Made by a program: the position numbers and the translations under genes. From Macrostomum lignano (lineage: Eukaryota), in the NCBI GenBank assembly GCA_002269645.1, contig NIVC01001540.1:20172-84171 (forward strand): a DNA stretch of 64,000 nucleotides, in the 5' to 3' direction. Each line of letters begins with the position of its first letter. Positions within the stretch are counted from its first letter, which is position 1. Under the pieces are notes generated by a model that searched no databases, was not told the DNA's origin, and worked only from the letters and a program-made list of their open reading frames with translations. Below, piece by piece: positions 13,211 to 64,000 of the stretch.

Positions 13211-13295
13211 TATAGATTCCATTTTATAGTTACAAAGCTATTTATAGTAAAATTCAGTGCTACTCATAGTAGTGTTTGATTTTCCGTGCATTTTG

Positions 13296-31100: not shown

Positions 31101-34100
31101 AAATCCTGATCCCTCCCTAAATCCCGATTCTCCCTAAATCCCGATCCTCCCTAATCCCGATTCTCCCTAAATCCCATTCTCCCTAAATCCCGATTCTCCC
31201 TAAATCCCGATTCTCTCTAAATCCCGATTCTCCCTAAATCCCGATTCTCACAAAATCCTGATCTCCTCTAAATCCCGATTCTCCCTAAATCCCGTATGTC
31301 CCTAAATCCCGATTCTCTCTAAATCCCGATTCTCCCTAAATCCCAATTCTTCCTAAATCCAAATTCTTCCTAAATCCCAATTCTTCCTAAATCCCGATTC
31401 TCCCTAAATCCCATTCTTCCTAAATCCAAATTCTTCCTAAATCCCGATTCTCCCTAAATCCCGATTCTCCCTAAATCCCGATTCTCCCTAAATCCCGATT
31501 CTCCCTAAATCCAGATTCTCCCTAAATCCCGATTCTCCCTAAATCCCAATTCTCCCTACATCCCGATTCTCCCTAAATCCCGATTCTCCCTAAATCCCGA
31601 TTCTCCCTCAATCCCGATTCTCCCTACATCCCGATTCTCCCTAAATCCCGATTCTCCCTAAATCCTGATCCCTCCCTAAATCCCGATTGTTCCTAAATCC
31701 CGATTCTCCCTAAATCCCGATTCTCTCTAAATCCCGATTCTCCCTAAATCCCGATTCTCCCTAAATCCCGATTCTCCCTAAATCCCGATTCTCCCTAAAT
31801 CCCGATTCTCCCTAAATCCCGATTCTCCCTAAATCCCGATTCTCCCTAAATCCCGATTCTCCCTAAATCCCGATTCTCCCTAAATCCCGATTCTCCCTAA
31901 ATCCCGATTCTGCCTACATCCCGATTCTCCATAAATCCCGATTCTCTCTCAATCCCGAATGTCCCTAAATCCCGATTCTTCCCGAATCCCAATTCTTCAA
32001 AAATCCCAGTTTTCCCATAAATCTCCCTACCGGATCCCGCAGCCGGCCCCGGTGTTGTTGGCAACGACTGTCCCCGTTCGACTCCGTGGCCCTGCAAGAG
32101 CGGCCAGTGCCTCTCGTTCGCTTTCATCTGCGACGGCCGGGCCGACTGCGTCGACGGCTACGACGAGGACAAGGCGCTGTGCACCGCCAGTGAGCAGCCT
32201 TCGGCGTTGTTGATTACTCAGCATTTGTCTATGGCCAAAAGCCCATCTGAGAAGCTGATAAATCCTTATTGAATGCGTAGCCTTCCGAGTATAGAAAAAT
32301 GGCGAAGGATCTGTTCCAATTGTGGACTTCTAAAAATAGCATCTGGACTTTGTATTAAAGCATTGGCTTGTTGCCAACAACAGCATCTGCAACTGCGACT
32401 TATTGGATGGGGTTGAGTTCCGATATGCTGGTTGGATAAGGGACGCCACCTGTCCAGGAGCTCTTTTTAGAAGTCCTGTGAACTCAGACTTGAAAACAAT
32501 CGTAATGACAGTTTTGGGGATTTCAGAAGACTTAGGAAGGATTCTGGAAGAACTGGGATTCGGCAAGAATTGGGATTCGGGAAGAATCGGGATTCGGGAA
32601 GAATCGGGATTCGGGAAGAATCGGGATTCGGGAAGAATCGAGATTCGGGAAGAATCGGGATTCGGGAAGAATCGGGATTCGGGAAGAATTGGGATTCGGG
32701 AAGAATTGGAATTCGGGAAGAATCGGGATTCGGGAAGAATTGGGATTCAGGAAGAATTGGGATTCAGGAAGAATCGGGATTCGGGAAGAATCGGGATTCG
32801 GGAAGAATTGGGATTCGGGAAGAATCCTGATTCGAGAAGAACTGGGATTCGGAAAGAATTGGGATTCGGGAAGAATCTGGATTCGGGAGACAAACTAATC
32901 GAAAGGAATGGAAATCGGGCATCAGACTTTCCAGTCCAGATGCTATTTTAAAAGTCTTTGCAAGAATGTTAATTTACAGCTGGATACTAGCCATTAGCTG
33001 GACTGGTGAACCCAGAGGTGGTCGGGCTTGGGTAGGGCCCATTTGTTTGCTGGAGTAGGTGGGAATTCTCCCGCTCAGTTTATAGTCAGTCAAACAACTA
33101 ACTCGACTCCATTAGCCTGATTGAGTCCTGCAGGTCAGTTGCGCTGCAAATTTATCTGTTTTATTGGGGGCGGCACCGCCCCGGCCCTCTCTGCTTACTT
33201 TGTCTCAGGGTGAGATAAAGGGGCTTGTTCTTCCACTTTTCAATCTCTCAGGGTGAGATTGTGAGACTTCTAACTTCTCAATTTTCAGAATCTTAAGATT
33301 CAGAATCTTCTACAATTATATTTAATCTCATGGTGAGAGTAGAGATTAACATACAGATTTGCATAGAGATTTATATATAGATTTAAAGAAAGATTGACGT
33401 AGAGATTTGCATAGAGATTTGAATAGACTGACATAGAGATTTGCATAGAGATTGACATAGAGATTTGCATAGAGATTGACATAGAGATTGACATAGAGAT
33501 TTGAATAGACTGACATAGAGATTTGCATAGAGATTGACATGGATATTTTCATAGAGATTGACGTAGAGATTTGCATAGAGATTGACATAGAGATTTGCAT
33601 AGAGATTGACATAGAGATTTGCATAGAGATTGACATAGAGATTTTCATAGAGATTGACATAGAGATTTGCATAGACTGACATAGAGATTTGCATAGACTG
33701 ACATAGAGATTTGCATAGACTGACATAGAGATTTGCATAGACTGACATAGAGATTTGCATAGACTGACATAGAGATTGACATAGAGATTTGCATAGAGAT
33801 TGACATAGAGATTTGCATAGAGATTTGCATAGAGATTGACATAGAGATTTGCATAGAGATTGACATAGAGATTTGCATAGAGATTGACATAGAGACTGAC
33901 ATAGAGATTTGAATAGACTGACATAGAGATTTGCATAGAGATTGACATGGATATTTTCATAGAGATTGACATGGATATTTTCATAGAGATTGACATAAAT
34001 TTTTTCATAGAGATTGACATAGAGATTTGCATAGAGATTGACATAGAGATTTGAATAGAGATTGACATAGAGATTTGCATAGAGATTGACATAGAGATTG

Positions 34101-37100: not shown

Positions 37101-39448
37101 CCCTCTATCAGACACTAGTTCACTCCCTCTATCAGACACTAGTTCACTCCCTCTATCAGACACTAGTTCACCCCAGCACTATTACAGTACTAAACCCTAA
37201 ATGAGTTTAGTCCACTCTCAAAAGTACATCGCGCACTTTCCTATGCTTTCAGAGGACCGGCCAGCCAGCATCATCCTGAAGATGTTCATCCAACGATTCC
37301 ACTACTGGCTCATCCCCGGTGTCCTGGGCGAGGGCAGCCCGGACACCCTGTCCAAGCTGCTGACCGGTGAGCCAATCTCATCGAGTAGTCACTGTTCGAA
37401 AGTTCTCAAACAATATATTAGCGTTAATTCTCATTTCACTTGCTGTCTGTCTGAGATGCTTTCAAGTTCTTCAAATACTGCAAGAGGAGCCCGGAAATAC
37501 AGAGTGAGATTATTAACAATCCTGCTTCTTCTACACTCTAAAGTCTATTTTTAGAGCTGCAGCTCGGGCAGGGAATCCGGCACTGAAGGGAACGAAATGA
37601 GAGTCTGAGAAATGCAGAATTTTTTTCTGTTTTAGTTAAACAGATATTGCTGTTCGCGGTCGTGACTGGCAGAATTTAATAGGAAAATATTCATTGAGAT
37701 GAAGGAACTCAGAATATGAAGAATTTTTGGCTGACATTGAAATGGATTGAGATGGAATGGAATGGGATAAGATGTGGTGAGATGGGATGAGATGGGATGA
37801 GATGGGATGAGACATGATGAGATGGGATGAGATGGAGTGAGATGGGATGAGATGGAGTGAGATGGGATGACATAGGATGAGATGGGATAAGATGAAGTGA
37901 GATGGGATGAAATGGGATGAGATGGGATGAGATAGGATGAGATGGGATCAGATGGGGTGAGATGTGATGAGATGGAGTGAGATGTGATGAGATGGAGTGA
38001 GATGGGATGACATAGGATGAGATGGGATAAGATGAAGTGAGATTGGATGAAATGGGATGAAATGGGATGAAATGGGATGAGATGGGATGAGATAGGATGA
38101 GATGGAGTTAGATAAGGATAGATGGAGTGAAATACGGTGAAAAATGATGAGGTGGAGTGAGATTGGATGAGATGAAATAAGATAGGATGAGATAGGATGA
38201 GACATTGTGAGAAGGGATGCGATAGGATGAGATAGAGTTAGATGGAGGTAGATGGAGTAAGATAGGGTGAGATAGGGTGAGAACAGCCGACTTACGAATG
38301 CACAGAAGACCTGAACTCAGACACAGAAAGTCAACCACGAACAATGAAACGAAAAAGGAGATATTAGAAAAGTCAATGCAAATGCAAAAGCAGGAAATTT
38401 ACCAGAATATTTTTTAAATGTCTGCTCAAACATTTGAACAGTAAAAACACAATAAATTGGCTAAATCTTTGTTCCATCTTGAATCGAATTGCTTCAACTA
38501 TTATTGAATGTCAAAGCCTGTCGCAGAACCTTTGCAGACAGCAGCAGAACTGGATGCTCCCCCCACAACGCAGAGAAGAAGAAATAGAAAAGATCTTTCA
38601 GGTTCTTTCAGTTGCCATCCAGAAATTCATAGCATGACTCAAAAAAATAATATGTCAGGCAATCCACCAGACTGCCGCATGTGCTGAAGAAATTGATCAA
38701 AGTTGCTCAGCTACTATTCTCACGGCTATAAGGGACTTAACTGACTCTACTCATCTCACAGCTGACTTGATCTAGTCCGTTCTGATCTAATATGACTTCG
38801 CCTAAGCTATTTTGAGTCCAACTGACCCATTCTGACCCACCCTGACCCACCCTGACCCACCCTGACCCACCCTGACCCACCCTGACCCATCCTGACCCAC
38901 CCTGACCTACCCTGACTCGGCCTGACCTACTTTGACAAATCCTGCCCATCCTGACCCATCCTGACCTACCCTGACCCAGCCTGACCTATTCTGACCCATC
39001 CTCCATCCTGACCCATCCTGATCCATCCTGATCCACTCTTACCCACCCTGACCAATCCTGACCAATCCTGACGCATTCTGACCTGCCCTGACCCGGCCTG
39101 ACCTATTCTGACCCATCTTGACCTATTCTAACCTATCCTGACCCATCCTGACCCATCCTGCCCATCCTGACCCATCCTAACCCATCCTGACCCATCCTGA
39201 CCCATCCTGACCCATCCTGCCCATCCTGAACCCTCCCCACAGAGGAGCGCAGCGTGGATGACTACGCCAAGAAGGTCAACCTGACCGCCGAGCAGCGCAA
39301 CAAACTCGTCCGCACCATGGAATTCGCCCGCGACGGCCGCGTTCTCGACCTGATCCTGGACGGCATGCCCGAGGACGCCTACCGCGAGGCCTACGCCCTA
39401 TTTGGTCGCATCGTGGATAGCGGCTTCCTCGGCTCCGAGGGCATCTAA
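25197..39448 (+). CDS. Prohormone-4-like secreted protein with one LDL-receptor class A domain (5 coding exons, ~185 aa)
   Basis: Exons 25197-25203, 25301-25384, 32043-32189, 37253-37366, 39243-39448, total 558 nt, all phase-1 GT-AG. Protein: signal MSPNFVTAFAVVLCLLGSATA, then YRQLMRTGK, LDLa [44 protein letters not shown], and C-terminal ...YALFGRIVDSGFL. The CDG..DC.DGYDED..LCTA.KRP and terminal GFL pattern match the prohormone-4 family as I recall it. The 7-nt first exon is the least certain. Confidence 0.8.
25391..32010. repeat. 17-bp satellite, ~6.6 kb (~390 units), filling prohormone-4-like intron 2
   Basis: Unit ATCCCGATTCTC(C/T)CTAA. It starts immediately after the GTGAGT donor (25385-25390) and ends ~30 nt before the acceptor. 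Confidence 0.98.
32545..32890. repeat. Related 17-bp array in inverted orientation (~20 units) in intron 3
   Basis: Unit GGGATTCGGGAAGAATC. Its reverse complement GATTCTTCCCGAATCCC matches the main satellite at 14/17 and exactly matches the variant at ~31975-31990. Confidence 0.92.
33340..34170. repeat. 12-bp-based minisatellite
   Basis: Alternating ATAGAGATTGAC / ATAGAGATTTGC units. Confidence 0.93.
34735..35742. repeat. 23-bp minisatellite followed by a (CA)n-like tract
   Basis: Unit TTCACGCT(G/C)CTTCATTCT(T/C)CATG. Confidence 0.94.
36250..37170. repeat. 24-bp homogeneous minisatellite (~38 copies)
   Basis: Unit CACTAGTTCACTCCCTCTATCAGA. Confidence 0.96.
37745..38280. repeat. Purine-rich 5/10-mer repeat (GATGGGATGA-like)
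   Basis: Direct observation in prohormone-4-like intron 4. Confidence 0.9.
38820..39230. repeat. 10-bp repeat CCTGACCCA(C/T) ending just before the last acceptor
   Basis: Direct observation. Confidence 0.9.
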
Positions 39449-42126: not shown

Positions 42127-42407
<281 letters not shown>

Positions 42408-43083: not shown

Positions 43084-46000
43084 ATGAACATTCTTCATAT
43101 TATCACTTTTGCCGTTAGCTTCGTCACACTCCCGTCGCAGTCGACATCACAGTCTGACAAAGCTTCATTTGACGATCTGGCGATGCACCTGCTGGGTCTG
43201 CGCAACGGTTCCTACAACAGGGATGCTCGGCCACCGCCTGACAACGGGCAGGCAAATACCGTGACAGTGTTTATTCAGCTAAACAGCCTGGTGAAGGTGG
43301 TGAGCAAAAACCGTCGCTTGCTATGACGCTTCATGAATTATATAGATGAATTTTTGCAGCAGGGACCGTCTCCACGCCTTCGCCTTCCGCGACATCGTCC
43401 TAAGTACCAGTGCTGACCCTGACTTTCTAGTCGTCAGGCATGAGCACATGCTGTCACACATGACCCTGACTTTCTAGTCGTCAGGCATGAGCACATGCTG
43501 TCACACATGACCCTGACTTTCTAGTCGTCAGGCATGAGCACATGCTGTCACACGTGACCCTGACTTTCTAGTCGTCAGGCATGAGCACATGCTGTCACAC
43601 ATGACCCTGACTTTCTAGTCGTCAGGCATGAGCACATGCTGTCACTCATGACCCTGACTTTCTAATCATCAGGCATGAGCACATGCTGTCACACATGACC
43701 CTGACTTTCTAGTCATCAGGCATGAGCACATGCTGTCACACATGACCCTGACTTTCTTGTCGTCAGGCATGAGCACATGCTGTCACACATGACCCTGACT
43801 TTCTAGTCGTCAGGCATGAGCACATGCTGTCACACATGACCCTGACTTTCTAGTCGTCAGGTATGAGCACATGCTGTCACACATGACCCTGACTTTCTAG
43901 TCATCAGGCATGTACACTCTCTGTGCCTTGGTGGTTGGCCCTCATGGGAGTAAATCACACGACAACCCCCTGTAAAATTTTAGCTCCAAATTAATGTAAT
44001 TAAATACGTAATTAAACCAGGGGTCGTAGCGCAAGAGTCAGACACATTTACCTGTGACAGAACAGCGGATTTTATTTCTAGATGAAGTTCGAGCAGAGCT
44101 TCAGTACCGATGAAGTAGCTGCAGAGAGGCAATCGCAAAGTGGTACAACGTATGTGATTTGATGAATACTGTGAGGTCACTCCAGACGATTGACTTTGTC
44201 GTAGATAAAATTCATGGCGAAGGCCTAATATTGAGCGGCGTTAGATTGTAGTCATGCTTGCTCTTACCTGCTTCTCCCTAATTGAATTATAATTTTTTTC
44301 AACTCCCAGGACTCATCTGCACAAGAGATCATACTGCAACTATGGCTATCTCTGGTGAGAATAAGTTTACAATAAAACAGTCATATGTGTTCTCATACTA
44401 GCTCTGTCTATACTGCATTGCAGGAATGGCTTGACAGCCGACTGTCATGGATGGACAAAGTCAATGCCACCGCAAATTCAACTAGCTACATTCTGGTGCC
44501 GGTAGAACGAATCTGGATGCCGGATGTTGCGTTCTATGATGTGTGAGGAGGAATTGGCAGACGACATTGATAGCTGTCAAAGGCCATAGACATATTTGTA
44601 GTACGCACTTTACCATAGATAGTTTCTGCTGCTAGCGTCCGTTAAGGTGGGGGAGCGAAGCCCCCATATTCTAACCATAGACAAATTTTTGAGACGGTAA
44701 AATAAGAGCAACGAGAGAAGATCAGAATAAGAGGGAAAAGAGAGACAAATTTAGGAGACCTTTGAGAAAAATATTTCCAATTATTAAATTATCAGAAAAT
44801 GTGAGAAAACGAGATTGCCATCAGCAGAGATTGTTCTTTGTGTTCAGTGATGACGTACCTTTCGGGGTTTCACCAAACACAAGTCGAACTGGGGAGCGGA
44901 CTTGGATGTAGGGCCGGGGGCTTTCGACAAGAGGCACCAAGAGAGTCACGACACATCGAGTCTAGTTGAACTGGCCGCTGATCAACATCAAGAAATCAAG
45001 GACACAGAGGCGACAGCGGTGGTGAATTCTACCCGAGGCTCGAACTAGGCAAAATGCGGCAAAACTTGAAGATTTGTTCGAGATACCATTCGAGTTCGTG
45101 TGTCTTACGAGTACAACACATAATGCGATTGGAAAATGCCTATCTCAGTTAGCTATTTTAGTAGCATTTCACACGGAAAGCTAGCTTGATAAGTCTGTGA
45201 GTGCGCCTCGGATCAACACACATGAGGCGTATCAGAAAAGTCCAGGTGGGTGGGGTACTGGAAGGTTTCTTCAGGAATACTCCGGAGCTCCATCGTCGTG
45301 GCGCTCCTGATGACTTCTATAGGTTGGAAAAACGAGTTCCTTTGAGCACTTCCTTGAGATTCGGGAATAGAAAAAGTCGCAGGGAGCTATAGGTCGCATA
45401 GGCGACTGCTTGACCAATGTCCTGCTGAAGGAAGCAAAAGTTTTTCTGAAAATAATAGCCTTAAGCTACGGGTGTGAATGAAAAAATAGTTTCACTAAAA
45501 AAGTGTATTGTCATATTTCGCCCCCCTTGCACCTACCGAACCGCGCAGCATGGAGGTGAAAGACATCACCGCTGCAGTCGCACCAGCGCTGTTGGAACGT
45601 AGCGGCAAAGTCCTGCGCACAGTTGGTCAAGTAGTGACTCTGAAGTGCGGCATGTCAATGCTGCACTTTCCGTACGATAAGCAGGTCTGCATCATCAAAG
45701 CGGCCACGATGATGCAGCGACCGGAGAAGATCAAGCTGAATGTTGAGCCGCACGGAAAAGCTCTGGACGAAGCGCTGGTCGAGTTTCTGGTCAAGAGCAA
45801 TGAATTTTGCATTGCGAATTTGAGTCTCCGTATAGTGCCAGCTGTGGGCTACGAGTACGCTGAGTTTTTAGTGAGCTTTCAGGTAAGTTTGCCGGAGACT
45901 TTTGATTCTGTTTGCTGTCAAGTTTGCTCTTCCATATTGTTCAGGTTGGATCATTTAAGAAAGCTCTCACGACAGAAGCCAAGCTAAAAACAGAATTCAC

Positions 46001-47048
46001 TTTTTATCAACAGCGCATGTCCAAGTTTTACGTAGTGAACCTCATCCTGCCCAGCATCCTGCTGCTCGCCATTTCCGCTCTCACCTTTCGACTGCCGCCA
46101 GAGTGCGGCGAGCGAGTCTCATTCAGCGTCACCATTGTGCTGTCAATGTGCGTGTTCCTGCAGCTCACTGGCAACTACACTCCAACGCAGAGCGAGTCCG
46201 TCCCCCTACTTAGTAAGCGTGCTGGCATTTTACAGCTTACTGTTCCATTTATGCTAGGGGTCGGTACACTTTTATTCTCAAAGGCCAGATAGAGAATCTA
46301 GCGCATGGCAGGAGCGAGGAAGAGAGGAGAGACGAGTGGAGAAGAGAGAAGAGAAGGAGAGGAGACGAGAGTAGGGGAAGTAGAGGAGAAGAGAGGAGAG
46401 GAGAGGAATGGAATGGAGTGGAGGGGAGTGGAGTGGAGTGGAGTGGAGTGCAGTGGAGTGGAGTGGAGTGGAGTGCAGTGGAGTGGAGTGGAGTGGAGTG
46501 CAGTGGAGTGGAGTGGAGTGGAGTGGAGTGGAGTGGAGAAAAATAGAGAGAGAAGAGAAGAGACAAACCTTGAGCGAGCCGGAGGCATTGTGAAGTTTCA
46601 AAGGATCCGAGGGCCGGATAGAGAGGCTTTGCGGTCCGGAGTTTCTCGACCCCTGATGTGTGTCCAGGACGCTTGTATTCACAACCACAATTAAACAATT
46701 TCAGCCTGTTACTACAGCATGGCGGTTGCCTTGACAATTCTAACCGTAGTTGGCAACGCTTTCGTCCTGAGCTGTCATTATCGACAGTTCAGCGAGTCGC
46801 GCGTTCAAAGCCGAGCCATTCGCCTGCTGTTTCTCAACCGGCTGGCGCTCTGCGGAATCAGCAACGACAGAAAAACTGTCGGGCCAACTCCGGACGATCG
46901 GGGAGTTTTGGAAAACGAATTCGCGATCGTGGCATCTGCGGCAGACAGCTGCTTCTTCCTGGTCATGCTGGCTGCCACAATGTCTCTCGCCATCGCCCTC
47001 CTAGTTGTTGAAACCTCCGTCTCCAGGAGCGATTGTCTGGGTGCCTAA
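43084..47048 (+). CDS. Divergent nicotinic-acetylcholine-receptor-like Cys-loop channel subunit, paralogue 1 (6 exons, ~418 aa)
   Basis: Exons 43084-43299, 44310-44354, 44424-44542, 45549-45882, 46014-46212, 46705-47048, total 1257 nt in frame. Signal peptide, YNRDARP, WLDSRLSW, IWMPDVAFY, Cys-loop CGMSMLHFPYDKQVC (C-x13-C), M1 FYVVNLILP, M2 GERVSFSVTIVLSMCVFL, M3, M4. Confidence 0.9.
43414..43912. repeat. 47-bp palindromic minisatellite (~10.5 copies) in receptor 1 intron 1
   Basis: Unit TGACCCTGACTTTCTAGTCGTCAGGCATGAGCACATGCTGTCACACA. No spacers. Confidence 0.95.
45215..45470 (-). mobile_element. Tc1/mariner transposase C-terminal relic in receptor 1 intron 3
   Basis: The minus strand gives frameshifted QSP..IAPCDF / LFPNLKEVLKGTRFS / IEVIRSATTMELRSIPEETFQ, matching the mariner YSPDLAP(S/C)DF.LFP.LK..L.G.RF region. 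Confidence 0.75.
46310..46562. repeat. GA-rich / (GGAGT)n tract in receptor 1 intron 5
   Basis: Direct observation. Confidence 0.9.
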
Positions 47049-47866
47049 GCATCCATCCATAAGTGCATACAAGCCTATCTTTACAATTTACTCGTACTTA
47101 CTGACGGTCATAACTAAGGTCTGATTAGGGTCTGACTAAGCGCAGTCAGTGTTTGATTACATAATCAACTCGTCTGCTAACTGAGAGCTACCGGGTGAGC
47201 GACCATCTACCTTCTGGACTCTCGGGAGGGGGACTGCGCTGCGGACACCGGCACCACCGGATCTCCCTGCGCGACACCGCAGCACTAGCTGCCCGTGGTC
47301 GGCAGGGGTTAGCGGAATGGTCGGCGACGCCTCCCCACTGTACCCGGATGCCCGGAACCTCCTGAAGCTAAATCAAGTCAATTAAAGATTTAACAATCAA
47401 AAAGGCAACATCAGAATACGCAGTTTTCAATTGTTTCAGTTTTTTCCAAATAATTCTATACTATCCGAAATATTGATGGAACTAATTTTGGTGTCGAATT
47501 ACTCTCTAGTGGCGCCTCTACAAGCTCTCATTAAACCACTTTGAAGTCCATTTTCCGAGAGGTTTCGGCCGGCTCTCGGGACTGAAACTCATAACAACCT
47601 CAAAACTACATTTATGGCACACTTATTATTTTAAACCACTTTCATTTTCTGGGAGTTATCGGAATACATTTCAACTTGATTTTACTGGACATGAAAAGAC
47701 GGTATTTAATTGAGAAGAAGGAAAAGACATGAGACCATAGACATAAAAAAGATTCGCATTGTTCAGTCTGTCTCCCCCTCCTTTAACTCGGCTTTAACCC
47801 ATGACTGATCTTGAAGCAAATTCTAAGCATATTGGCAAGGAAAAATGGAAGAAAGTTACATTTTAG

Positions 47867-48115
47867 CCAACTGAAGTTGACTTCAGTGGAGACTTCGCTG
47901 GAGACTACGAACCTAATCGGCTTTCGGCAGAAGGGCTAGATCAGCGTGATCAGAATGCTAATCGCGGCAACTTGGACAACATTAGAGATCTGAACGTGAA
48001 CACAAAGTCACCGACTACTCTTAAGCGAAACAAGTGGGCCGTTGAAGTGTGTAACCGTTGGCTTCAAGAGTCGAAAATCGAGTGCAATGTGCCTATCGAA
48101 GACATGAAGACAGAG
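47867..48115 (+). mobile_element. Possible Crypton/DUF3504-like N-terminal fragment
   Basis: The open frame has an acidic stretch followed by SPTTLKRNKWAVEVCNRWL..IEDM. This resembles the T...T.WA...F..W helix upstream of Crypton-type tyrosine recombinase domains. No catalytic part was seen. Confidence 0.35.
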
Positions 48116-48548
48116 GTTGTACTAGTTTCCACTTTTGTGGAACTTTATGCAGTACGCAATATGAATAATTCGTTTCTATGGCTGGCGCTGCTCTACATGC
48201 AAGTGAAGCTGCTACTGAGTCAATAGTTACTCTTCACTTCGGAGAAACCTGCAAAACTGTTTCAGCAAATAACTATGTCATTTAATGTGAGCCTCTATAA
48301 TCTTCATGTAGCTCCCCAGCTGCTGGTCTATTGGAAGTGGAAACCGCGGTACCGGTCGAAACCCGGGCTACAATGCAAGCCATTGGTTCGCTTATCAAGT
48401 CAGGTGGCCATTTTCATCAAACTTTAGCCGTGTAAATATGCTTGGCTCTCCCCAGACTGGTGGCAAATAAGCCCATTTAGTTGAACTAAAAGCAGACAGC
48501 GGGCGACTCTTCAAGCTGCCAATTCTGACCAGTCGATTCATTACTGCG

Positions 48549-50337
48549 ATGCGCGTCATCCCAGTGATTTTCCCTCTGGCTCTCTGCTGCACCTGCAACC
48601 TGACAGATGGGTTCGCGCCTTCGCCGGACGAAGTTTTGATGCGTGGTCTCGGACTGACCTCGGGCGGAGTCTACGTAGCTGGAGCCCGGCCGCCCCCTGA
48701 CAATGGCACCGCCAACCTAATCAACGCTTTTGTCCTGTTTGCGAGCCTGGTCAAAATGGTGAGACAGCGAGGCGTCAATCAATTTGTCATTCACGCGATA
48801 TGGTTATTCAAAACTTTTACTCTTCAGGACTCAACGGCGCAGCATCTGACTCAGCAACTTTGGCTATCGATGGTTTGACAATTTCAAAATTTGTTTTATA
48901 GTATTTATCTAATGTATGAGAAGTTATTAGTTTAATTTTCAAGTTTATTACACTTCAGAACTGGATAGACCAACGGTTATCGTGGCTTGGAAAATTTAAT
49001 TCCAGCTATGACCAGGTGAAAAGCATAATTGTTCCCATGAATATGATCTGGCAACCGGATGTCACATTTTATGACGTGTAAGACTACTCTAATCCATTAC
49101 AAAGTTTTATCTTTTTATAAATTATCGACACGCGTTCCGCTGCCATTCCAGCATAGAAGTTAAGGACTTGACCGCCGGTAAATCGCCCGCAAAGGTTTTC
49201 AGCAACGGTAGAGTGCACCAAATAGTCGAAGTCCAGGTAACCTCGAAGTGTCAGCTAAAGCTGCTGAACTTCCCGTACGACAGGCAGACTTGCGTCCTGA
49301 AGCTGGCCAACATCATGACCACCGAGAGCGGCGCTCTGCAAATTGGTTCACTAAATCCAAGCGACACTGTGACGACGTTTCTCACAGAGAGCAACGAGTA
49401 CTGTCTGCTCCGGATGAGCAACAGAATGAGGGACATGACTACCTACGCCTACATTGAGTTCAGTGTCACATTTCAGGTATAGTGCTAACTCAGAGTTGCC
49501 TCTGCGGTTAATAACTAGTGGGTCAAGGTAGTTGGTTCGATTCAAAATTAATTCATTAACGAGTGATCTGGTTGTATTGTAGAGAAGATCTACATTCTAT
49601 TTGGTGAACCTCATCCTGCCCAGCATCTTGCTGCTCGCCATCTCCGCTCTCACCTTTCGACTGCCGCCAGAGTGCGGCGAGCGAGTCTCGTTCAGCGTCA
49701 CCATTGTGCTGTCAATGTGCGTGTTCTTGCAGCTCTCTGGCAACTACACTCCAAATCAGAGCGAGTCCGTTACCCTGCTTAGTGAGTGTCATTTCGTTTA
49801 CAATTTTCATTATTGTTTTCTTTATTAACCATAACTGTCTCTGGCTACAGCGGGTTACTACAGCCTGGCTGTTGTCATGACAATGGCGAACGTACTCGGC
49901 AACGTTTTCGTTCTGGGCTGCCATCTGCGACAGCAAGCCGACACTCTCGTGGACAACAGAGCCGTTCGGGTGCTCTTTCTCAATCGATTCGTCCTGAAGG
50001 GCCTGCAAATTGGAAACTGCGTGAGAGTGACTCTCGACAAGCATTTGTTAGCTCATTGAAAAAGGCCCCACATGCTTTAGAAAAATCCCTCTCTGGCCAT
50101 TTGCAGGCCCAAGTCGGGAATTCCCAGCCAAATTCAGATCGATCCGAACGAGTTGCGGACGCAAATCGTGCGGCCGAGTCCGATCGGTGTAACGAATGGC
50201 GTATTGTGGCTCTGGCCGCCGACAGATGCTTCTTTGTGCTGTTTATGAGCGTCCTGGCCCTTCTTGTCGTGGCTCTAATTGTTATTGAGCTGACCGCATC
50301 CCGGCTTGACTGTCTCCGTGAAAGTCAAGATGTTTGA
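48549..50337 (+). CDS. Divergent nicotinic-acetylcholine-receptor-like Cys-loop channel subunit, paralogue 2 (7 exons, ~432 aa)
   Basis: Exons 48549-48758, 48828-48872, 48959-49077, 49152-49476, 49583-49781, 49851-50020, 50107-50337, total 1299 nt. Exons 2, 3 and 5 have the same lengths (45, 119, 199 nt) and phases as paralogue 1. Cys-loop CQLKLLNFPYDRQTC, M4 NEWRIVALAADRCFF. The last intron (50021-50106) is inferred to restore the M4 frame. Confidence 0.88.
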
Positions 50338-50631: not shown

Positions 50632-51710
<1,079 letters not shown>

Positions 51711-54224: not shown

Positions 54225-57200
54225 TCAGATATTCTCCATCAAAATAGCCACCTTGCGAACAATCTGCCTGTGCTTGCTGACCGGCCCTGAAAATGAGCAA
54301 TTTTCGATTGAAGATCGCAGTGCTTGAAATGCAACAGTTGCCAGGGTGGGGTTGAGTACGGCTTGTCGTGCGATTCACGACCACGAAGTTTGTGGGTGTA
54401 CCTGCTTACAGCCCCGTGACTGACTAATAGGCTCGTATTTAAGTGTTAAGTAAACTCGGTATAGCGGCCAATAGAGTCAGGCCTCACTAAATTACTAGGT
54501 AAATCCTTAATATCGATCCAAACGAGCTTACCTATGTAGCTGAGCAGCACTGGCAGGAACAGGAGACCGTGCAGAGCACCGAACAGCACGATACCCAGGT
54601 ACATGCGGAAGTAGAACACTCGGAACAGCTGCGACTTGGCAAAGCCCAAGATAATGATGCCGCCCAGCTTCGTCAGGGTGATGCCGGAAAACACGGAGCT
54701 GCCCATGTGGACGAAGCAGTCGCGCGCTTTCTCCAGTCGCGTCCTCTCAGCGGACACGGTAAATGCTCGGACCAGGTGAGAACAGAACTCCACCGAGATT
54801 CCGAGTGCCTGTTGAGTAAATTAATATTATTTCGTTTGTACTGAAGTACGTTTCGATAAAGTGTACCAAAGGCTACAGAAGGTCGAGACTAATAGTTACA
54901 GAAGTAAATATGATAATAAGTAGCTTTGTTGTTGCATGAGTAGTACTCACCATGACAAGATTAACAAGCGAGACGGCATTCAGCGATATGTTCCAGAAGA
55001 ACATCAGGCCCAGCATTGACAGCAGGATTAGGCCAATAGTCAGCAGAATGATGAACGTGGCAAAGAAGTCGAAGCCAAGCAGCATCAGGGTGACAAGGCC
55101 GATCGCTGCCAAGCAGACCCCCAGATTGATAGCCGTGTCCGTCACAATTGTGAGGTACTGCTCGTAGAATACGTAGAACACACTGTACGGGAACACCTTC
55201 AGATCGTCGCGTCCAGTCGTGTCCTTGAAGTGACTCGTGATGTCGTCCGAAATTTTTACGGCCATCTTGTACGCATTGATGAAATCATCGCCGTTGCGCA
55301 AAACCGAATGGTAGGTCATGTAATGAGAGGCGGACACCCCCACTGTGCGAGACTGCCGTTTCTCGCGATTAAGAGCCGCAGCATAGGCCGCATGGCCGCC
55401 CTTGGGGCAGGCGACGCCTGGATTGTCCTTGAGGAAAAAGTCGAGGTAGCGGAAAAACTCGCCCTGCACTGGCCAGCCGTCGGTTGTAAAATTGACGCCA
55501 CAAGGCGTGCAGTCGGCGGTGCGGTTCGATGCAGGGCAGAACGAGCCGGACTTGTGGTAGCTGCAGCAAGGCGAAGTCTCGCTCGGCTCAAGCCAGTCAA
55601 CGTAGTCATCAAGCCAGGAGCTCGGTGGGCTTACAATGTGCGAGTAGTTCGGCGCCTCAGCCAATTGAGACAGCTGATTCAGCATCGACTTCTGTGGGCA
55701 TCCCGCGCGACTGCAGATGAGATTTTGGTGCACCGGATTGGCGAAGTCCATCGGTCCGGAGACCACAAAGTAGACTGGCGGGCCGACGCTAAGGTACTTC
55801 TTGATGCCGTCAAAGTATGAGGTCACGTAACTGTCTTCTGGCATGCTCAGCTCTTGGTCCAATCCAACACGAATGTTGTGTACGCAGGCCAAGCACACGC
55901 AGGCCCAGCCGACAAAGATGCTAATTATTATTGGTCGAACCCAACGGTTGAAGATAAAGGTAGACAAGAAGCGCTTAAAGAATTGGAACAGCAGGCCTTT
56001 GCTCTCGGTCTTTTCTGGCTTATTATTCGCTGCCTTCTCCGCCTTCTCCACTTTCTTAGACGCACAGCAGCATAGTATATCCATCCGTTTAGCGGCTTGC
56101 CTTTTGGCGTCCAGCGATAGAACGGCAACAAAGCAACTTATCTGGAGCAGAAAGTCCAGCAGCACAGCCATGCCAGCGTAAAGCGCAAACACCCTCACCG
56201 CCGGCATGGGGGTAAAAGCGCCGAAAAAGAAGGCCACAGACTCGCTGAGGCTGCTCAACAGCATGCTGGGACCAACACGGCCGACCACCCGGGCCACCTT
56301 TGCCTCCACACTGTCTGCTCCGACGAAGTCACGTTGCAATGTGTGCACCAGAATGAATATGTTATCAACTCCGACTGCCAGAACAAGGAAGGGAACTACT
56401 TCGATGATTATCAGCGTGGCAGGAAATCCCAGGTAACTCCATACGCCCAGGGAGCAGAAAACTGCCACTAGAACAATCACAACTCCAACCAGGCCTAGTG
56501 TAATCTTTACATTAACTAGCAGCCGTCTACAGGATTTGTATTGACCAAGCGTCAACGTCACGTAGGCAAACATTAAGAGGTAGCTACCAAGAATGGTAAC
56601 TACATCTGAGTTGGACTCCCGTTCTAGCTCGTCTTGAATTGAACGCTCAGACGAATAACGCACGTCGAGTTCTTCGTGCGACTCGTTCTTAAACTTGTGC
56701 ATTACGTTTAGAAAAGCTTCCTCCCATTCCATGGCCATGCGAACCTGTAATTGAAGCAGATAAACACACGCTTGCAAATGCCAATCATTAAGCTATATAA
56801 TATTCGAATCAATATGACAATACTTTTACCTGCTCCGATTCCCGATTTGCGTCGTTATTAACGAGAAACGTGAGAACAATGGCGGTAGCATTGAGGTACT
56901 CTTTTCCACTGTAGCCGCCAAATACCACCCAAGGGTAGATCGGGCCGCCCCACTCTGAGAAGCAGCTCAGCTTCAGGTTGATGTCGCTATTAACGCTGAG
57001 CGGGTTTTTTGTGCAAGCAATCAGGTGTGTGACAAAGTCGGCGTAGGTCAGACCGAAGTCAAAATCTATGGCGACCTTGTTCAACGTGCTGGTGTTGGAC
57101 TGGAAGTAGCCCAAAGGACTTTGCACCGCGCAGGTTGAATAGCTAGGCGAAAGCGGCTTAAAGCAGATGTCAGTCAAGCTGATGTCTCGTTTCTTGGCTT

Positions 57201-60137
57201 TGCTCCACACCTTCATGTTAGTGATGTTTGTCTGCAAATTAAGCACCTTCTGAAGGAACTTTTTGTTAATAACTGGCCCGAATGCCCTGTGCACTGGAGG
57301 ATCAAAGTAAGGAGACTCTGGCTCGTGAATGTAGTGCGTCTGGTTTCTCGGGATAATGATCACCTGCTCAGTTCGGTAGAATGGTCTGAAATGACAAGAA
57401 AGGTTCGAGCGGTTCATCAGTGCACACTTAATGAGTACATCGTGCGTTGCATTGGCATCTCATATCAGGCCACTTTTTGAACTTAAAATAGCATAACCCA
57501 GCAAATTCAGACAGATATTTGGTTTAAGAGTGTGTCAAGTAACTGGCTTTCTGCCCGACACTACTTATGGTTAGAGAGGGGTTGGAGTGAGTAGAAGAGT
57601 AGCCTATTTAAAGCGGCTCTGTAATTCCAGGTAAATGCGAGGCGGCGCACCCAGCTATGGCAACAACAAAAAACTATATGCCAATTAAGTGAGTTGACCG
57701 ACACAGAGAGACGGTGTGTGGACAGATTGAATTACGAACGTATTATGGCAAGATTTGGAGCCTTCTTAAAACTTGCAAATGGTTTGTGCTTTTCTGAGCG
57801 CCGTTACAGCTCACACATAGGCGCCGCACCGGGACTGGGACGGAATTAAGAAAGGAATGCTGCAAAGAAAACATTACGATGGATTGCGGCCGCTCAGAAT
57901 GGCCTAATTTTTCTGATGCACGCTGGGTGGGAAGGGGGCCGTGTGGCATGACCGCCCCCGCCGAGACAGGTAGTCTAATGATGGGTTATGGGTGGGTCTA
58001 CGCTCATAGTGTCAGGTGGGTAAGACTCCTCACCCAACTCTCTGTACACAGGGTTTGACTGCACTAGATCCCACCCATTGTAATGCGAGGCTATTGAAAA
58101 TGTATCATATCTGAACATGATAGACTAGAAGCCGTCTATCGATATATTAATCTACCTTACAATTTTTATGCACTTAAGTGACTCCCCCCTACAATCTTAT
58201 GAATCGTGTTTAAAGTTACAATATATAATACGTTAAATAATTTTCACGCATAATAGCGGGTTGCCCACAGAACCCCTCAATAGCTGAAGAGAGAATTCAT
58301 ACAGCAGTCCTGCAGTCTACGCCCTTCCCTCCCCAAAGTCCTGGGACTGATCGAACCGTGGGGTGACTAACTGCAGCTGAAAAAAGCTTTAGCTTGCGCT
58401 GTATGCATTCGATATTTGCGCGCCGCGCTAAATTTCTTATACTCGTACCCTCGTCGCTTGCAAAGGAATCATGCCGATGCAGCGAAACGCGGCGCGCCAC
58501 GAACTACTATAGACACACTGCGCACAGGCTGGGACTGCCAGCCTAGAGAAGAAAAGAGAGAGGGAAAGAGAAAATTCTAGTCAAAGCCGGTCTAGCATTG
58601 TTAATAATTTGCTTTCGAAAACAGCGCTCAAGCACAACTCAAGGTAATGGCTGACCCTTAATGTAGAAGACAGAATTAAGAGGACAGATGAAGTGTAAGT
58701 ATTCACAAAGGAAAGTTACAATTTGCTTACCCAAAGTTTTTGTCAAAAAAGGCTTTCTGTTGGCGGGCAGTAGACTGCGGGGAGCTCCATAGCTCAACAG
58801 GGTCGGTAGTGACTTGGAAGAACAGAACGCCGCAGGACAGGGCTATGCAAACTACAAAGCTCAGCATGATGACGAGCACCGGATGCTTCGCCACGAGCAG
58901 ACCCCAGCTAGTAAAGGCGGCTTCGATTCGAGCTTCAATCTGCCCGCTGACGCGATCTGAGCAGTCGATTTCGGTATCGGACAAGCGACTGCCGTCAGTT
59001 AGGAAGGCCTGGCTACTCGGCGAGGTGAGGCCGTACGTCAATTCGGTGGATGTAACCTTTTCGGAGGACGCTGCTGAGTATGCAGCATTCGAATCCTTGG
59101 AAGATGTGCTAACTCGAGAGTTTAAGTTCTTACGGTGCGTTTGAGCAAAGAAATAAATGTTCCAGGCGGCGAAGACGACTAAGAATGAGACGTAGATGGC
59201 AGCCATGACAATGTACCAGCCGTCGATTCCCAGCACCTGCCAGGGTTTCGGATCGTTTGGAGTGTCTGGTTTCTTCGGGCAGACAGCTTGACAATCGCTA
59301 CAGGAGCAGGCAGCAACTCCTCGCTCTCGATCGCCAAGATGACACTGAACTGAGCTTTCATTCATTGGGCAGTGCATTTTACCATCGATAGTGAAGCATT
59401 GGTCCTCAAGGGAGAATTTTATGTCGAACGGAGCATACGGATTTTCGGCTGGACTACCCAAAAACTTAAACACGTCTTTCACGGTGCACGATTCCACGCT
59501 GACAGATCCGCACATTGCTGATATAGCTTTGCCGTTGCCGTGACTAACGCCTTTGCAGCTGTTGAAGAATGTGTGAGCAAAGTTGCTGCTGATGTTGTAG
59601 TTCACGCTTGTCACTGTATTTACGGATTCGTCGAAGCTGGTCGCCTGTAGGTACAAGCTTTGGTTCGGCGAGCAAGCCATGTTGCAGAACATGGATCGAA
59701 AATTTTTCCAACACGCTGGACAGCGCCTAAGTAGAAGGCCTGCGCGATCCATTTGGATGCTCAACGTTTCAATCTGACGCTCTGAGCAGCAAGTCACGAC
59801 GTCCCCTGAACTTCCAGAAGCGATTTCCGGGCAAAATGATCGTAGCAGAGACAAAGACTTTTGGTTGTTAAGAGGCTTCGCGGGCCCGTTGTATCGGCAA
59901 TTGATTGGATTATCCGTTGGGCTACGAGAGCACTCATCATACATAATGCAATCGGCAGAGGCCTAGAAAGAATAAGATGTTAGCACAGGCATTCATTTTA
60001 ATTTAATGTTTGGTACCCGCAGAGCATTTAATGTATTGAACAAAAGCATTAAAAAGACACGGAGAATCTCGTCATTTAAAACTCACATAACTCAGTCCAA
60101 GTGTTAATAGAAGGATCACGACGACCAAATATTTCAT
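54225..60137 (-). CDS. NPC1: NPC intracellular cholesterol transporter 1 (6 coding exons, ~1323 aa)
   Basis: Exons 60137-60087 (signal [17 protein letters not shown]), 59962-58731, 57385-56830, 56744-54951, 54808-54532, 54286-54225, total 3972 nt. Cys-rich NTD ([27 protein letters not shown]), [93 protein letters not shown]. The last exon is less certain. Confidence 0.95.
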
Positions 60138-62139: not shown

Positions 62140-64000
62140 ATTGTAGTAAATTTTTGTTTGTAATCAGGTAAAGTGGCTCGCTTGGCAAGTAAAATAAGAA
62201 GAAATCCCAAAATCAACATGTGGTTTTTTCGACGCGTTTCGCACACCAAGGTGCATCGTCAGATATATTGTTCGAAACGAAAGGTGTGAGTGTGCAAGGA
62301 TCATGTCAAACAACACATTTGATCCTTGCACGTACCAGCGCCAGCGCATCTTACCCTGCGGTAGCCAACCTGGTCAGCTCTACGGGGTCTGCAAGGTGCA
62401 CAAACCAGAAAAACCCCTCAGACCAATTGTTTCCATGGTCAACACCGCCGAATACGAGCTTGCTAAATACCTGGACTCGCTCATCAAACCTTGCATTTCT
62501 ACTGAATTCACCTCGAAATCCAACAGCGCTTTTCTGAAAGATCTTCAAAATTCGTGCTCTGACATCAAGAAGTCTGACATTCTCTGCAGTTTCGATGTTG
62601 TTTCACTCTTTACTAACATCCCCCTGAAACTTGCTATTGACCTCGCCACTGAATAAGTGTTTAAACGCAATCCTACCTCCATTTCTTTGTCTAAGGACTC
62701 TTTTAAAAAACTTCTTGGCTTTGCGACCTCTGGAATCTTCATGTTCAACAGTAAATACTACCGGCAAATTGAGGGCTGCGCCATGGGAAGTCCGCTGGCC
62801 CCTACTCTGGCTGAAGTCTGCTTGACTCATTGGGAAACCAACAACTGGATGTCCCTTGACTGTGCGCCCAAATTTTACAGACGCTATGTCGATGAAACGT
62901 TTGCCATCTTTGAAAGCAAGAACAAACTTGACCATTTCTTCCAGTCTATCAATTCCACCCATGACAATATTAAGTTCACCAATGAGATTGCTACTGACCA
63001 TAAACTTCCGTTCCTTGACCTTGACATCGATCTCAGCGGTGGGAACCTTTTCACCAAAGTTTTCCGCAAAAAAACCTTCACCAATCTCATTCTCAACTTT
63101 TATGCCGTGTGCCCCAGACAGTGGAAATCTGGTCTGATCAGATGCTTGCTTCACAGAGCCTACACTGTCTGCAACTCCTGGATCAACTTTGACCAAGAAA
63201 TTAGATTCCTGACCAAAATGCTCCAACAAAACGGTTACCCATCTGCCTTCATCCACCACAACATCCACAAATTCATTTCTGAAAGAGTGAATCACCAAAA
63301 AGTTTCCAAACCTGACCACATTGACCTTAGTGAACCAACCCTCATTCTCCCTTTCTTTGGCCATCCTTCTCTCACCTTCAAAAACAGGATTTGCAAATTA
63401 TTCCACAACTCTTTCAACAGCCAAATTCGCGTTATTTTCCGCTGTTCCAAAGTTGGCAGTTTTGTCGGTCGGTTAAAGTCACGTGTACCCCGTGCTCTGC
63501 GTGCAGGTGTTGTCTACTGTTTCAACTGCTCTGTTGACCAGAGCGTCTCCTACGTGGGGAAGACCAAAAGACACCTGCACACTAGAACCAGGGAGCACTG
63601 GCTCAAACCGTCGGCCATCCAAACCCACCTTTTGGAATGTAACAGCTGCTCTAATTGTACACAACGAAGAACGTTTTAAAATCATCGATCAATGCCCATC
63701 TGATCACAAGCTCAAGATCTTAGAAGCATTGTACATAAAAAACTAGTCGCCCACCCTTAATACGCAACTCCAACACAGTGGTGCAGGCCATGTTCTCCGT
63801 GTATTCTGAGTGAGAGAGCACTGACCTTGTTGTAAGCCAGTACTCATTCAATTATATTTTGTTTTCTGCCTATTGGTCTTCGCCCCGCCCTACGGACTAT
63901 CAACCTCCAACTACTCTGTACATACAAAATACTTACTCACCAGCTACTTGACAAATAATTTATAAATTCGCTTACTCACACCTTTCGTTTCAAACAATAT
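62140..64000 (+). mobile_element. 5'-truncated, inactivated Penelope-like retroelement (RT + GIY-YIG endonuclease) with inverted 5' pLTR; runs off the window end
   Basis: RT motifs QLYGVCKVHK..PLRPIVS, SFDVVSLFTNIP, YRQIEGCAMGSPLAP, RYVDET, LPFLD, VFRKKT. Endonuclease GVVY.FNC..SYVGKTKRHLHTRTREH..LEALYI. Lesions: in-frame TAA 62654-62656, frameshift ~63670, TAG 63744-63746. Positions 63974-64000 match the reverse complement of 62265-62291 at 26/27. Confidence 0.92.
62225..62270 (-). ncRNA. Minimal type I hammerhead ribozyme core in the inverted pLTR
   Basis: The minus strand at 62262-62231 reads CUGACGA U GCAC cuuggu GUGC GAAAC GC GUC: conserved boxes, a 4-bp stem II and a palindromic ACGCGU stem III. 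Stem I pairing is not obvious. Confidence 0.7.

Follow-up and report, generated by a model that had tools for sequence, protein, structure and literature searches.

Chemotactile receptors (CRs) of cephalopods, such as octopus CRT1 (PDB 8EIS) and squid CRB1, are tandem-clustered, lineage-specific expansions of the nicotinic acetylcholine receptor (nAChR) type that carry no signature acetylcholine (ACh) motifs (PMC11526382; PMC10338036). Their ligand-binding domains (LBDs) are diversifying, and they form non-selective cation channels as homo- and heteropentamers (PMC11526382; PMC10338036). Here we describe two adjacent genes, A and B, in a 64,000-nt stretch of the Macrostomum lignano genome (assembly GCA_002269645.1, contig NIVC01001540.1, positions 20,172 to 84,171; hereafter the window). 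A preliminary description of the locus had taken them for orphan nAChR-like channels that lack the ACh site and are candidate chemosensory receptors.

Several other described systems bear on this locus. Molluscs and annelids have large lineage-specific nAChR-like expansions in tandem arrays, and those of molluscs are largely intron-poor retrocopies (Jiao et al. 2019; PMC6896357). The text of that study nowhere mentions flatworms, Platyhelminthes, Schmidtea, or Macrostomum (PMC6896357). Alvinella Alpo4 has no loop C vicinal disulfide, no response to ACh or serotonin (5-HT), and no known agonist, and it keeps the aromatic cage, including loop B W159 (PMC10338036). The zinc-activated channel (ZAC) belongs to the cationic Cys-loop channels; its loop C is poorly conserved and unusually short, and its agonist is not a transmitter (PMC11536092). 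We propose, with a probability of roughly 55%, that A and B, both intact, are tandem paralogues within a clade of cationic Cys-loop receptor subunits specific to Macrostomum, and that this clade has lost the classical transmitter site and its channels would be gated by another stimulus at remodeled interfaces of the extracellular domain (ECD).

The two gene models were built by hand from three-frame translation and inspection of splice junctions. The span given for the pair in the preliminary description (43084 to 50337) proved exact, because it runs from the ATG of gene A to the last base of the gene B stop codon. The genes are indeed a tandem pair. They lie on the same strand, 1.5 kb apart, and are the only two pentameric ligand-gated ion channel (pLGIC) genes of the window; tblastn with both proteins found no third copy anywhere in it. 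Corresponding exons of A and B measure 45 nt, 119 nt, and 199 nt. A 45-nt exon, then an exon that ends in phase 2 past the loop A Tyr, and an M1-M2 exon of about 195 nt make up what we take to be the conserved gene layout of alpha7-type nAChRs and 5-HT3A. Unlike the mollusc expansions, A and B keep five to six introns and the 45-nt exon, which is presumably typical of nAChR and 5-HT3 genes.

The closest database proteins to A and B are all from M. lignano. An exact look-up of both models found neither as a correct separate entry in the protein collection. UniRef A0A1I8IAP1 (P0193; 1077 aa) is a mis-annotation of this locus, a fused model that joins a window open reading frame (ORF) at 37201-37551, gene A exons 5 and 6, an intergenic ORF at 47867-48223, and gene B. 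Its upstream part is a fragment of an LDL-receptor-class-A-like gene. Gene A exons 5 and 6 are identical to part of this entry. When gene B is aligned to it over 416 residues, 415 are identical and T181I is the sole difference; the match spans the exon 6/7 junction (GNC|AQV). The fused model skips the 45-nt exon 2 of gene B. Its inclusion in our model is supported by the NCBI model of the paralogue P0189, which has an equivalent exon. The intergenic ORF between A and B (+ strand; 119 codons; …NTKSPTTLKRNKWAVEVCNRWLQESKIECNVPIEDM…) has no Pfam match and may be a mobile-element remnant or a small gene.

Both proteins have the domains of a Cys-loop receptor. Neur_chan_LBD scored 100.9 bits in A (E 9e-29) and 95.6 bits in B (E 4e-27), and Neur_chan_memb scored 69.3 and 66.8 bits, respectively, all above the gathering cut-offs. 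The pre-M1 Arg and a glycosylation sequon are conserved in the family. The cation-type GER motif and 9' Leu noted earlier for M2 hold throughout: the -1' residue is acidic and the 0' residue is Arg in 12 of 12 family units (GER in 11, GDR in P0012), and 9' is Leu in all 12. By this motif, the pore of A, B, and the family is of the cation type. The AlphaFold2 (AF2) model of the paralogue P0001 (core pLDDT >90) has the beta-sandwich and M1 to M4. In a Foldseek search, it matched alpha7, muscle, alpha4beta2, and 5-HT3A structures at about 1e-26, all within one order of magnitude, with TMt of 0.78 to 0.84. We considered the schistosome "Cys-less" ligand-gated channel clade (PMC9874803) for A and B and excluded it, since both Cys-loop cysteines are present. 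Domain content and motifs place A and B in the Cys-loop or pLGIC superfamily, in its cationic nAChR/5-HT3/ZAC branch.

In the alignments, every family unit that has loop B sequence shows a dismantled principal face at the classical amine site. As first described, A and B have no Trp in loop B; Met takes its place in A and Ile in B. The HMMER alignment of A to human alpha4 and beta2 is gap-free from the Cys-loop through loop B. Loop B sequence is available for ten family units, counting A and B, and their TrpB column reads M, I, V, Q, R, I, A, I, V, and one gap (W in 0/10); in the outgroup it reads W in 70 of 81 sequences. The sister paralogue P0046, the outermost M. lignano member of the clade, still has this Trp. 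Therefore, the Trp was lost inside the M. lignano lineage.

Loop C is also altered. There is no vicinal Cys-Cys in A, B, or any other family unit, whereas 31 of 80 outgroup sequences have one, and TyrC1 (the loop C Tyr190 equivalent) is deleted or aligned to Val in A and B. The earlier hand estimate of a loop C about 6 residues shorter than that of alpha7 agrees with our measurement: from the GEW-type aromatic to the pre-M1 Arg there are 27 aa, compared with a mode of 33 in Cys-Cys-bearing relatives. This span is 27 in every full core-clade unit, 28 in P0012, and 30 in P0046. In the P0001 model, which has the same 27-aa span, beta9 and beta10 are linked by a 4-residue turn (pLDDT >90), so that loop C would be a tight hairpin instead of a cap. 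Two further residues had been described as retained. The loop A Tyr is present in A and B but not across the family, where only 3 of 9 aligned units have it. The loop D Trp is present in A, B, and all family units, but it carries no information because it is invariant in the outgroup (81/81).

Neither A nor B has any of the features that define an alpha-type subunit, that is, the loop B Trp, the loop C Tyr, and the Cys-Cys pair. We prefer to speak of a lost cation-pi amine site, which is a safer wording than a lost ACh site. Like Alpo4, the family is without the loop C vicinal disulfide; unlike Alpo4, it has lost the loop B Trp. The comparison with 5-HT3A is similar. Over the M1-M2 loop and the beginning of M2, the family is near-identical to the hagfish 5-HT3A-like protein P0005 (LPPECGERVSF.VTI.L), and neither the family nor 5-HT3A has a vicinal Cys-Cys. 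However, 5-HT3A depends on loop B Trp183, which the family does not have, and the family loop C is about 4 to 6 residues shorter.

To delimit the family, a profile of four M. lignano relatives (P0001 to P0004) was scored against 1.84 billion representative proteins, and individual sequence units were rescored with a profile built on A, B, P0001, and P0002. Scores above 200 bits were confined to M. lignano proteins (P0001 to P0004, P0008 to P0010, and P0012); all others were at or below 190 bits and generic. In a neighbor-joining tree with the 81 nearest single-unit representatives, eight core units form a clade at 99%, and together with P0012 and P0046, also from M. lignano, they form a clade of 10 units at 100%. 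The family is thus lineage-specific, as proposed, in that all close relatives among these representative proteins come from M. lignano. It is also expanded. We counted about a dozen core units, a three-gene P0012-like array, and P0046, with tandem arrays at other loci. The count of loci is inflated because the M. lignano genome is duplicated. A literature search found no study that describes this M. lignano family, and one survey that included the species binned such sequences simply as "nAChR-like."

That label is correct in placing the family in the cationic nAChR/5-HT3 branch, but nothing in the profile scores or the tree favors nAChR over 5-HT3. Descent from an ACh receptor is not supported by these data. 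Against the PDB, the family profile scores 5-HT3A (166 bits; 1.4e-47) above alpha4/beta2 (158 to 159 bits), alpha1 (152 bits), and alpha7 (145 bits), and the ancestor need not have been an ACh receptor. Gene A alone has its best PDB matches in beta2 (5e-35) and alpha4, at about 1e-35, and matches 5-HT3A at 7e-32. Membership in 5-HT3 is no better founded: the Trp183 equivalent is absent, the family joins the vertebrate 5-HT3 clade in only 17 of 60 bootstraps, and ECD-only and transmembrane-only trees give differing sisters. What can safely be said from these alignments is that, within the cationic nAChR/5-HT3 branch, the family stands as an isolated clade on a long branch.

The LBDs of A and B are as divergent as first described. 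ECD identity between the two is 45%, compared with 82% over M1-M3, and across the family the corresponding ranges are 29 to 47% (66% in one pair) and 59 to 86%. The A/B ECD exons are saturated at both synonymous and non-synonymous sites. Tandem organization is the rule in this family. In each of two old fused gene models, P0008 and P0009, three family units follow one another. Three contigs of GCA_002269645.1 (NIVC01000984, NIVC01003722, and NIVC01003094; L001, L002, and L003) encode the P0012-like subfamily (P0155), each with three same-strand genes. Another locus (L004) has P0189 and a second, apparently partial copy, of which only ECD exons were found.

The pore exons of A and B are far more alike in DNA than the rest of the genes. 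A tract of 186 nt, exon 5 minus its first 21 nt, is 93.5% identical, and the other exons are 56 to 69% identical. Of the residues conserved between A and B, 89% have the same codon in both genes within the tract. The figure is 43% for the ECD exons and 52% for exon 6 (Fisher p = 2e-8), and 33 to 35% would be predicted from codon usage. The GC content at third codon positions is 0.73 to 0.76 in the M1-M2 exon and 0.56 to 0.65 elsewhere, as GC-biased conversion would give. A database copy of gene B, P0192, has a B-type ECD yet carries A-type residues at two of the three A/B differences of exon 5. This mosaic is the pattern expected from gene conversion. The L001 array leaves no ambiguity. Its three genes are 95 to 97% identical over about 900 bp, a stretch reaching from just upstream of the M1 exon across a microsatellite intron to the M3 exon, and their ECD-coding halves have essentially no nucleotide similarity. 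The 3' halves of these genes have therefore undergone partial gene conversion. For the family, the sequence patterns indicate that the pore module undergoes gene conversion while the ECD diversifies.

The family also has a cysteine pair of its own. A Cys directly after NEF/Y at the start of beta9 (Cys214 in A) is found in 12 of 12 family units and in 0 of 80 outgroup sequences. A second Cys, 8 to 9 residues past M4 (Cys415 in A), is found in 10 of the 11 units that reach the C terminus; the exception is P0008b, whose C terminus is corrupted by the fused gene model. This co-occurrence suggests a Cys214-Cys415 disulfide, by which the tail after M4 would be tied to the base of the ECD. An ARPPPDNGxAN motif just before beta1 is conserved in the family as well.

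We suggest the following mechanism for our proposal of channels gated by another stimulus. Family subunits would assemble with each other or with other members into cation channels; because identical transmembrane domains pack readily, assembly with each other is probable. The principal (+) faces of these channels would offer no usable classical aromatic box at which ACh or 5-HT could open them, so they would respond to something other than ACh or 5-HT. Gating would come instead from a different stimulus acting on remodeled, paralogue-specific ECD interfaces. In the sequences themselves, a fast-diverging ECD is joined to a pore module that is kept near-uniform, partly by gene conversion between array members.

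Several points weigh against this proposal. A subunit of the beta type that serves only as a complementary partner would likewise show a degenerate principal face and keep the loop D Trp. The structural picture comes from an AF2 model of P0001, a paralogue only 44% identical to A, and not from A or B itself. Neighbor joining is too weak for deep pLGIC relationships. Finally, codon identity in the M1-M2 exon is 71 to 73% even between subfamilies on different contigs, so nucleotide-level constraint could contribute beside gene conversion. A simple A-B conversion event, judged against a 45% background, was considered and then softened when the between-subfamily controls gave these values for the same exon. 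The M1-M2 exon would reflect either pervasive family-wide conversion or an added nucleotide-level constraint, together with an extra A-B excess.

The alternative that survives best is that A and B are structural or complementary subunits of the beta type. They would provide only (-) faces and pore helices, the ACh sites would lie on canonical alpha-type M. lignano subunits, and the channels would still be gated by ACh. Vertebrate non-alpha nAChR subunits (beta2, beta4, beta1, and delta) are the top matches to A; they too are without the Cys-Cys pair and the tyrosines of loop C, as the beta2 alignment shows, and their cation pore carries CGEK or CGER. In M2 and in the M1-M2 loop (PPECGER), the family is similar to heteromeric alpha4/beta2, and the 27-residue loop C span is also found in 10 of 80 outgroup subunits from other animals. 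The loop D Trp, retained in all units, fits as well but, being invariant everywhere, does not discriminate. However, the known non-alpha nAChR subunits, like most of the outgroup, retain the loop B Trp (KFRSWTYD in beta2), and the family has lost it throughout. Vertebrate non-alpha subunits also have long intracellular loops and are conserved across vertebrates, whereas the M3-M4 loop of the family is very short (about 45 aa in A). In the tree, the long-branch family is not nested among the conserved neuromuscular non-alpha subunits, the grouping that the preliminary description had named as its counter-case. ECD diversification over about a dozen paralogues also exceeds the needs of a structural role. 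On balance we think this explanation unlikely, although it deserves to be taken seriously.

A more specific version of our proposal is that the clade is a flatworm-specific family of ionotropic chemoreceptors, which arose independently of the cephalopod CRs from a transmitter-gated cation channel. Conversion would keep the pore uniform, the ECD modules would diversify for environmental or conspecific cues, and the M4 tail may be held by a disulfide. We put this forward tentatively and consider it rather improbable. The candidate label of chemosensory receptor comes only from likeness to the cephalopod CRs, an argument by analogy. Among the 80 nearest relatives from other animals, 11 have neither the loop B Trp nor the Cys-Cys pair, so site loss alone is common and gives no sign of a sensory role. 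Like the CRs, the family is a tandem-clustered expansion with a divergent pocket that lacks ACh motifs, a likeness in how the systems may work and not in descent. The CRs were compared by description and lie outside our tree and alignment. The A/B clade holds M. lignano sequences only (100%), which points to a separate origin and makes the likeness convergent. Loop C of the family, unlike that of the CRs, is a minimal hairpin. We know of no report of pore-exon homogenization by gene conversion in CRs.

Ion or proton gating, as in vertebrate ZAC or the nematode proton-gated Cys-loop channels, would depend on protonation or metal binding at ECD interfaces and would not need a capped aromatic pocket. 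The reduction of loop C to a 4-residue turn in the P0001 model agrees with this idea, as do the profile scores, which put the family close to the 5-HT3 side of the cationic branch. ZAC has been reported to have a loop C far shorter than that found elsewhere among Cys-loop receptors, even in CRT1, and to be a non-selective cation channel (PMC11536092). The very short loop C of the family (span 27; modeled turn 4) is like that of ZAC, which we compared from the published description (PMC11536092) and not by alignment. No ZAC chain was among the 60 PDB matches listed for gene A and the family profile, and ZAC, unlike the A/B family, is a single-copy vertebrate gene. Inspection of the alignment, which was not a systematic search, revealed no conserved cluster of His, Cys, Asp, or Glu in loops A to F, and the pocket loops vary between paralogues, a poor fit to one shared simple ion ligand. 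We find this explanation quite doubtful.

That A and B are decaying or functionless duplicates, with relaxed constraint after tandem duplication behind the degenerate site and divergent ECDs, might be argued from the ECD saturation, the at least one partial copy at a related locus (L004), and the absence of the exact A and B proteins from the protein collection, but it is very improbable, because both frames are intact over six to seven exons with canonical splice sites, the Cys-loop cysteines, FPYD, pre-M1 Arg, GER, 9' Leu, glycosylation sequon, and family Cys pair are all conserved, M1-M3 has kept the high A-B identity given above, and gene B has near-identical copies in another assembly that differ at only 1 to 5 residues.

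What sets the A/B clade apart from the known orphan lophotrochozoan expansions is that its loop B Trp is completely lost, its loop C is minimal, it has a Cys pair of its own, and its concerted evolution is module-specific. To our knowledge, orphan nAChR-like expansions are common in lophotrochozoans, and a function has been assigned to the cephalopod CRs only. The A/B clade is a small and tractable second case, in which the amine site is gone and the pore has been kept uniform, in a species for which transgenesis, RNAi, and in situ methods exist. If the family is sensory, Cys-loop channels would have been convergently recruited as chemoreceptors in a second phylum. If it is beta-like or ion-gated, A and B would still define how far an ECD can drift with gating preserved. 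In either case, homogenization of the pore exon together with ECD diversification offers a testable example of module-specific concerted evolution in an ion channel family. The features are listed in Table 1.

Table 1. Positions of the features of genes A and B and of a related array (window coordinates unless a locus is named)
Feature	Position	Strand	Remarks
Gene A	43084-47048	+	418 aa, 6 exons; hand-built, all GT-AG, consistent phases; Pfam LBD and transmembrane domains
Gene A exons	43084-43299, 44310-44354 (45 nt), 44424-44542, 45549-45882, 46014-46212, 46705-47048	+	
Gene B	48549-50337	+	432 aa, 7 exons; hand-built, all GT-AG, consistent phases; Pfam LBD and transmembrane domains
Gene B exons	48549-48758, 48828-48872 (45 nt), 48959-49077, 49152-49476, 49583-49781, 49851-50020, 50107-50337	+	
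Gene A Cys-loop, C160-x13-C174	45646-45690	+	With FPYD; both Cys invariant in family and outgroup
Gene B Cys-loop, C158-C172	49249-49293	+	With FPYD; both Cys invariant in family and outgroup
Gene A loop B, KAATMMQ	45697-45717	+	Met181 at TrpB position; ungapped HMMER alignment to alpha4 and beta2
Gene B loop B, KLANIMT	49300-49320	+	Ile179 at TrpB position; column table
Gene A Cys214 (NEFC), start of beta9	45799-45810 (Cys codon 45808-45810)	+	
Gene A Cys415, post-M4 tail	47022-47045 (Cys codon 47034-47036)	+	Proposed Cys214 partner
Gene B Cys209; Cys425 in tail	49393-49404; 50299-50322	+	Equivalents of the gene A pair
Gene A beta9-loop C-beta10 hairpin	45820-45879	+	No Cys-Cys; 6 residues shorter than alpha-type
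Gene B beta9-loop C-beta10 hairpin	49414-49473	+	Equivalent of gene A hairpin
Gene A M2 pore helix, ECGERVSFSVTIVLSMCVFLQLTGN	46101-46175	+	-1' Glu271, 9' Leu281; column table
Gene B M2 pore helix	49670-49744	+	Equivalent of gene A M2
Homogenized M1-M2 DNA tract, gene A	46035-46220	+	blastn 93.5% vs gene B; flanking introns unalignable
Homogenized M1-M2 DNA tract, gene B	49604-49789	+	Counterpart of gene A tract
P0012-like three-gene tandem array	L001:900-14400	same strand	Also at L002, L003

Repeats are frequent in and around the two genes. Intron 1 of gene A (43414-43912) holds a 47-bp tandem repeat (10.6 copies; 97% matches), and intron 5 (46391-46538) holds a (GAGTG)n microsatellite of about 30 copies; the L001 paralogues also have a microsatellite in the intron after the M2 exon. 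The pair is bracketed by (TGTC)70 upstream of gene A (42127-42407) and by a perfect (TAGA)270 of 1.08 kb just downstream of gene B (50632-51709). Rfam and tRNA scans returned nothing near the two genes. At 8644-8703 (+) there is a weak Rfam tRNA match (34.6 bits; E 0.0018) with no ARAGORN call, which is probably a tRNA-derived repeat or pseudogene.

The neighbors of A and B are housekeeping genes, and the window contains no other receptor genes. Large exons at 54449-59962 (- strand) encode a Niemann-Pick C1 (NPC1) homologue with NPC1_N, sterol-sensing, and Patched domains. At 10373-10705 (+) lies an exon of a Rab-type small GTPase, after which comes a long repeat ORF rich in His, Pro, and Thr. 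The gene for mevalonate diphosphate decarboxylase (13251-14996, +) is split by a repeat. An ORF of at least 340 codons at 62198-63676 (+) has no Pfam match. We take it to resemble the reverse transcriptase of a retroelement, with a GIY-YIG-like motif (…YVGKTKRHLHTRTREH…) after it, possibly from a Penelope-like element. Farther upstream, a 17-bp satellite (ATCCCGATTCTCCCTAA; about 390 copies) forms a 6.6-kb array at 25391-32023, which accounts for the extreme GC skew (-0.74) at 26 to 32 kb, and further satellites of 23, 27, and 48 bp lie at 21.3 to 35.7 kb.

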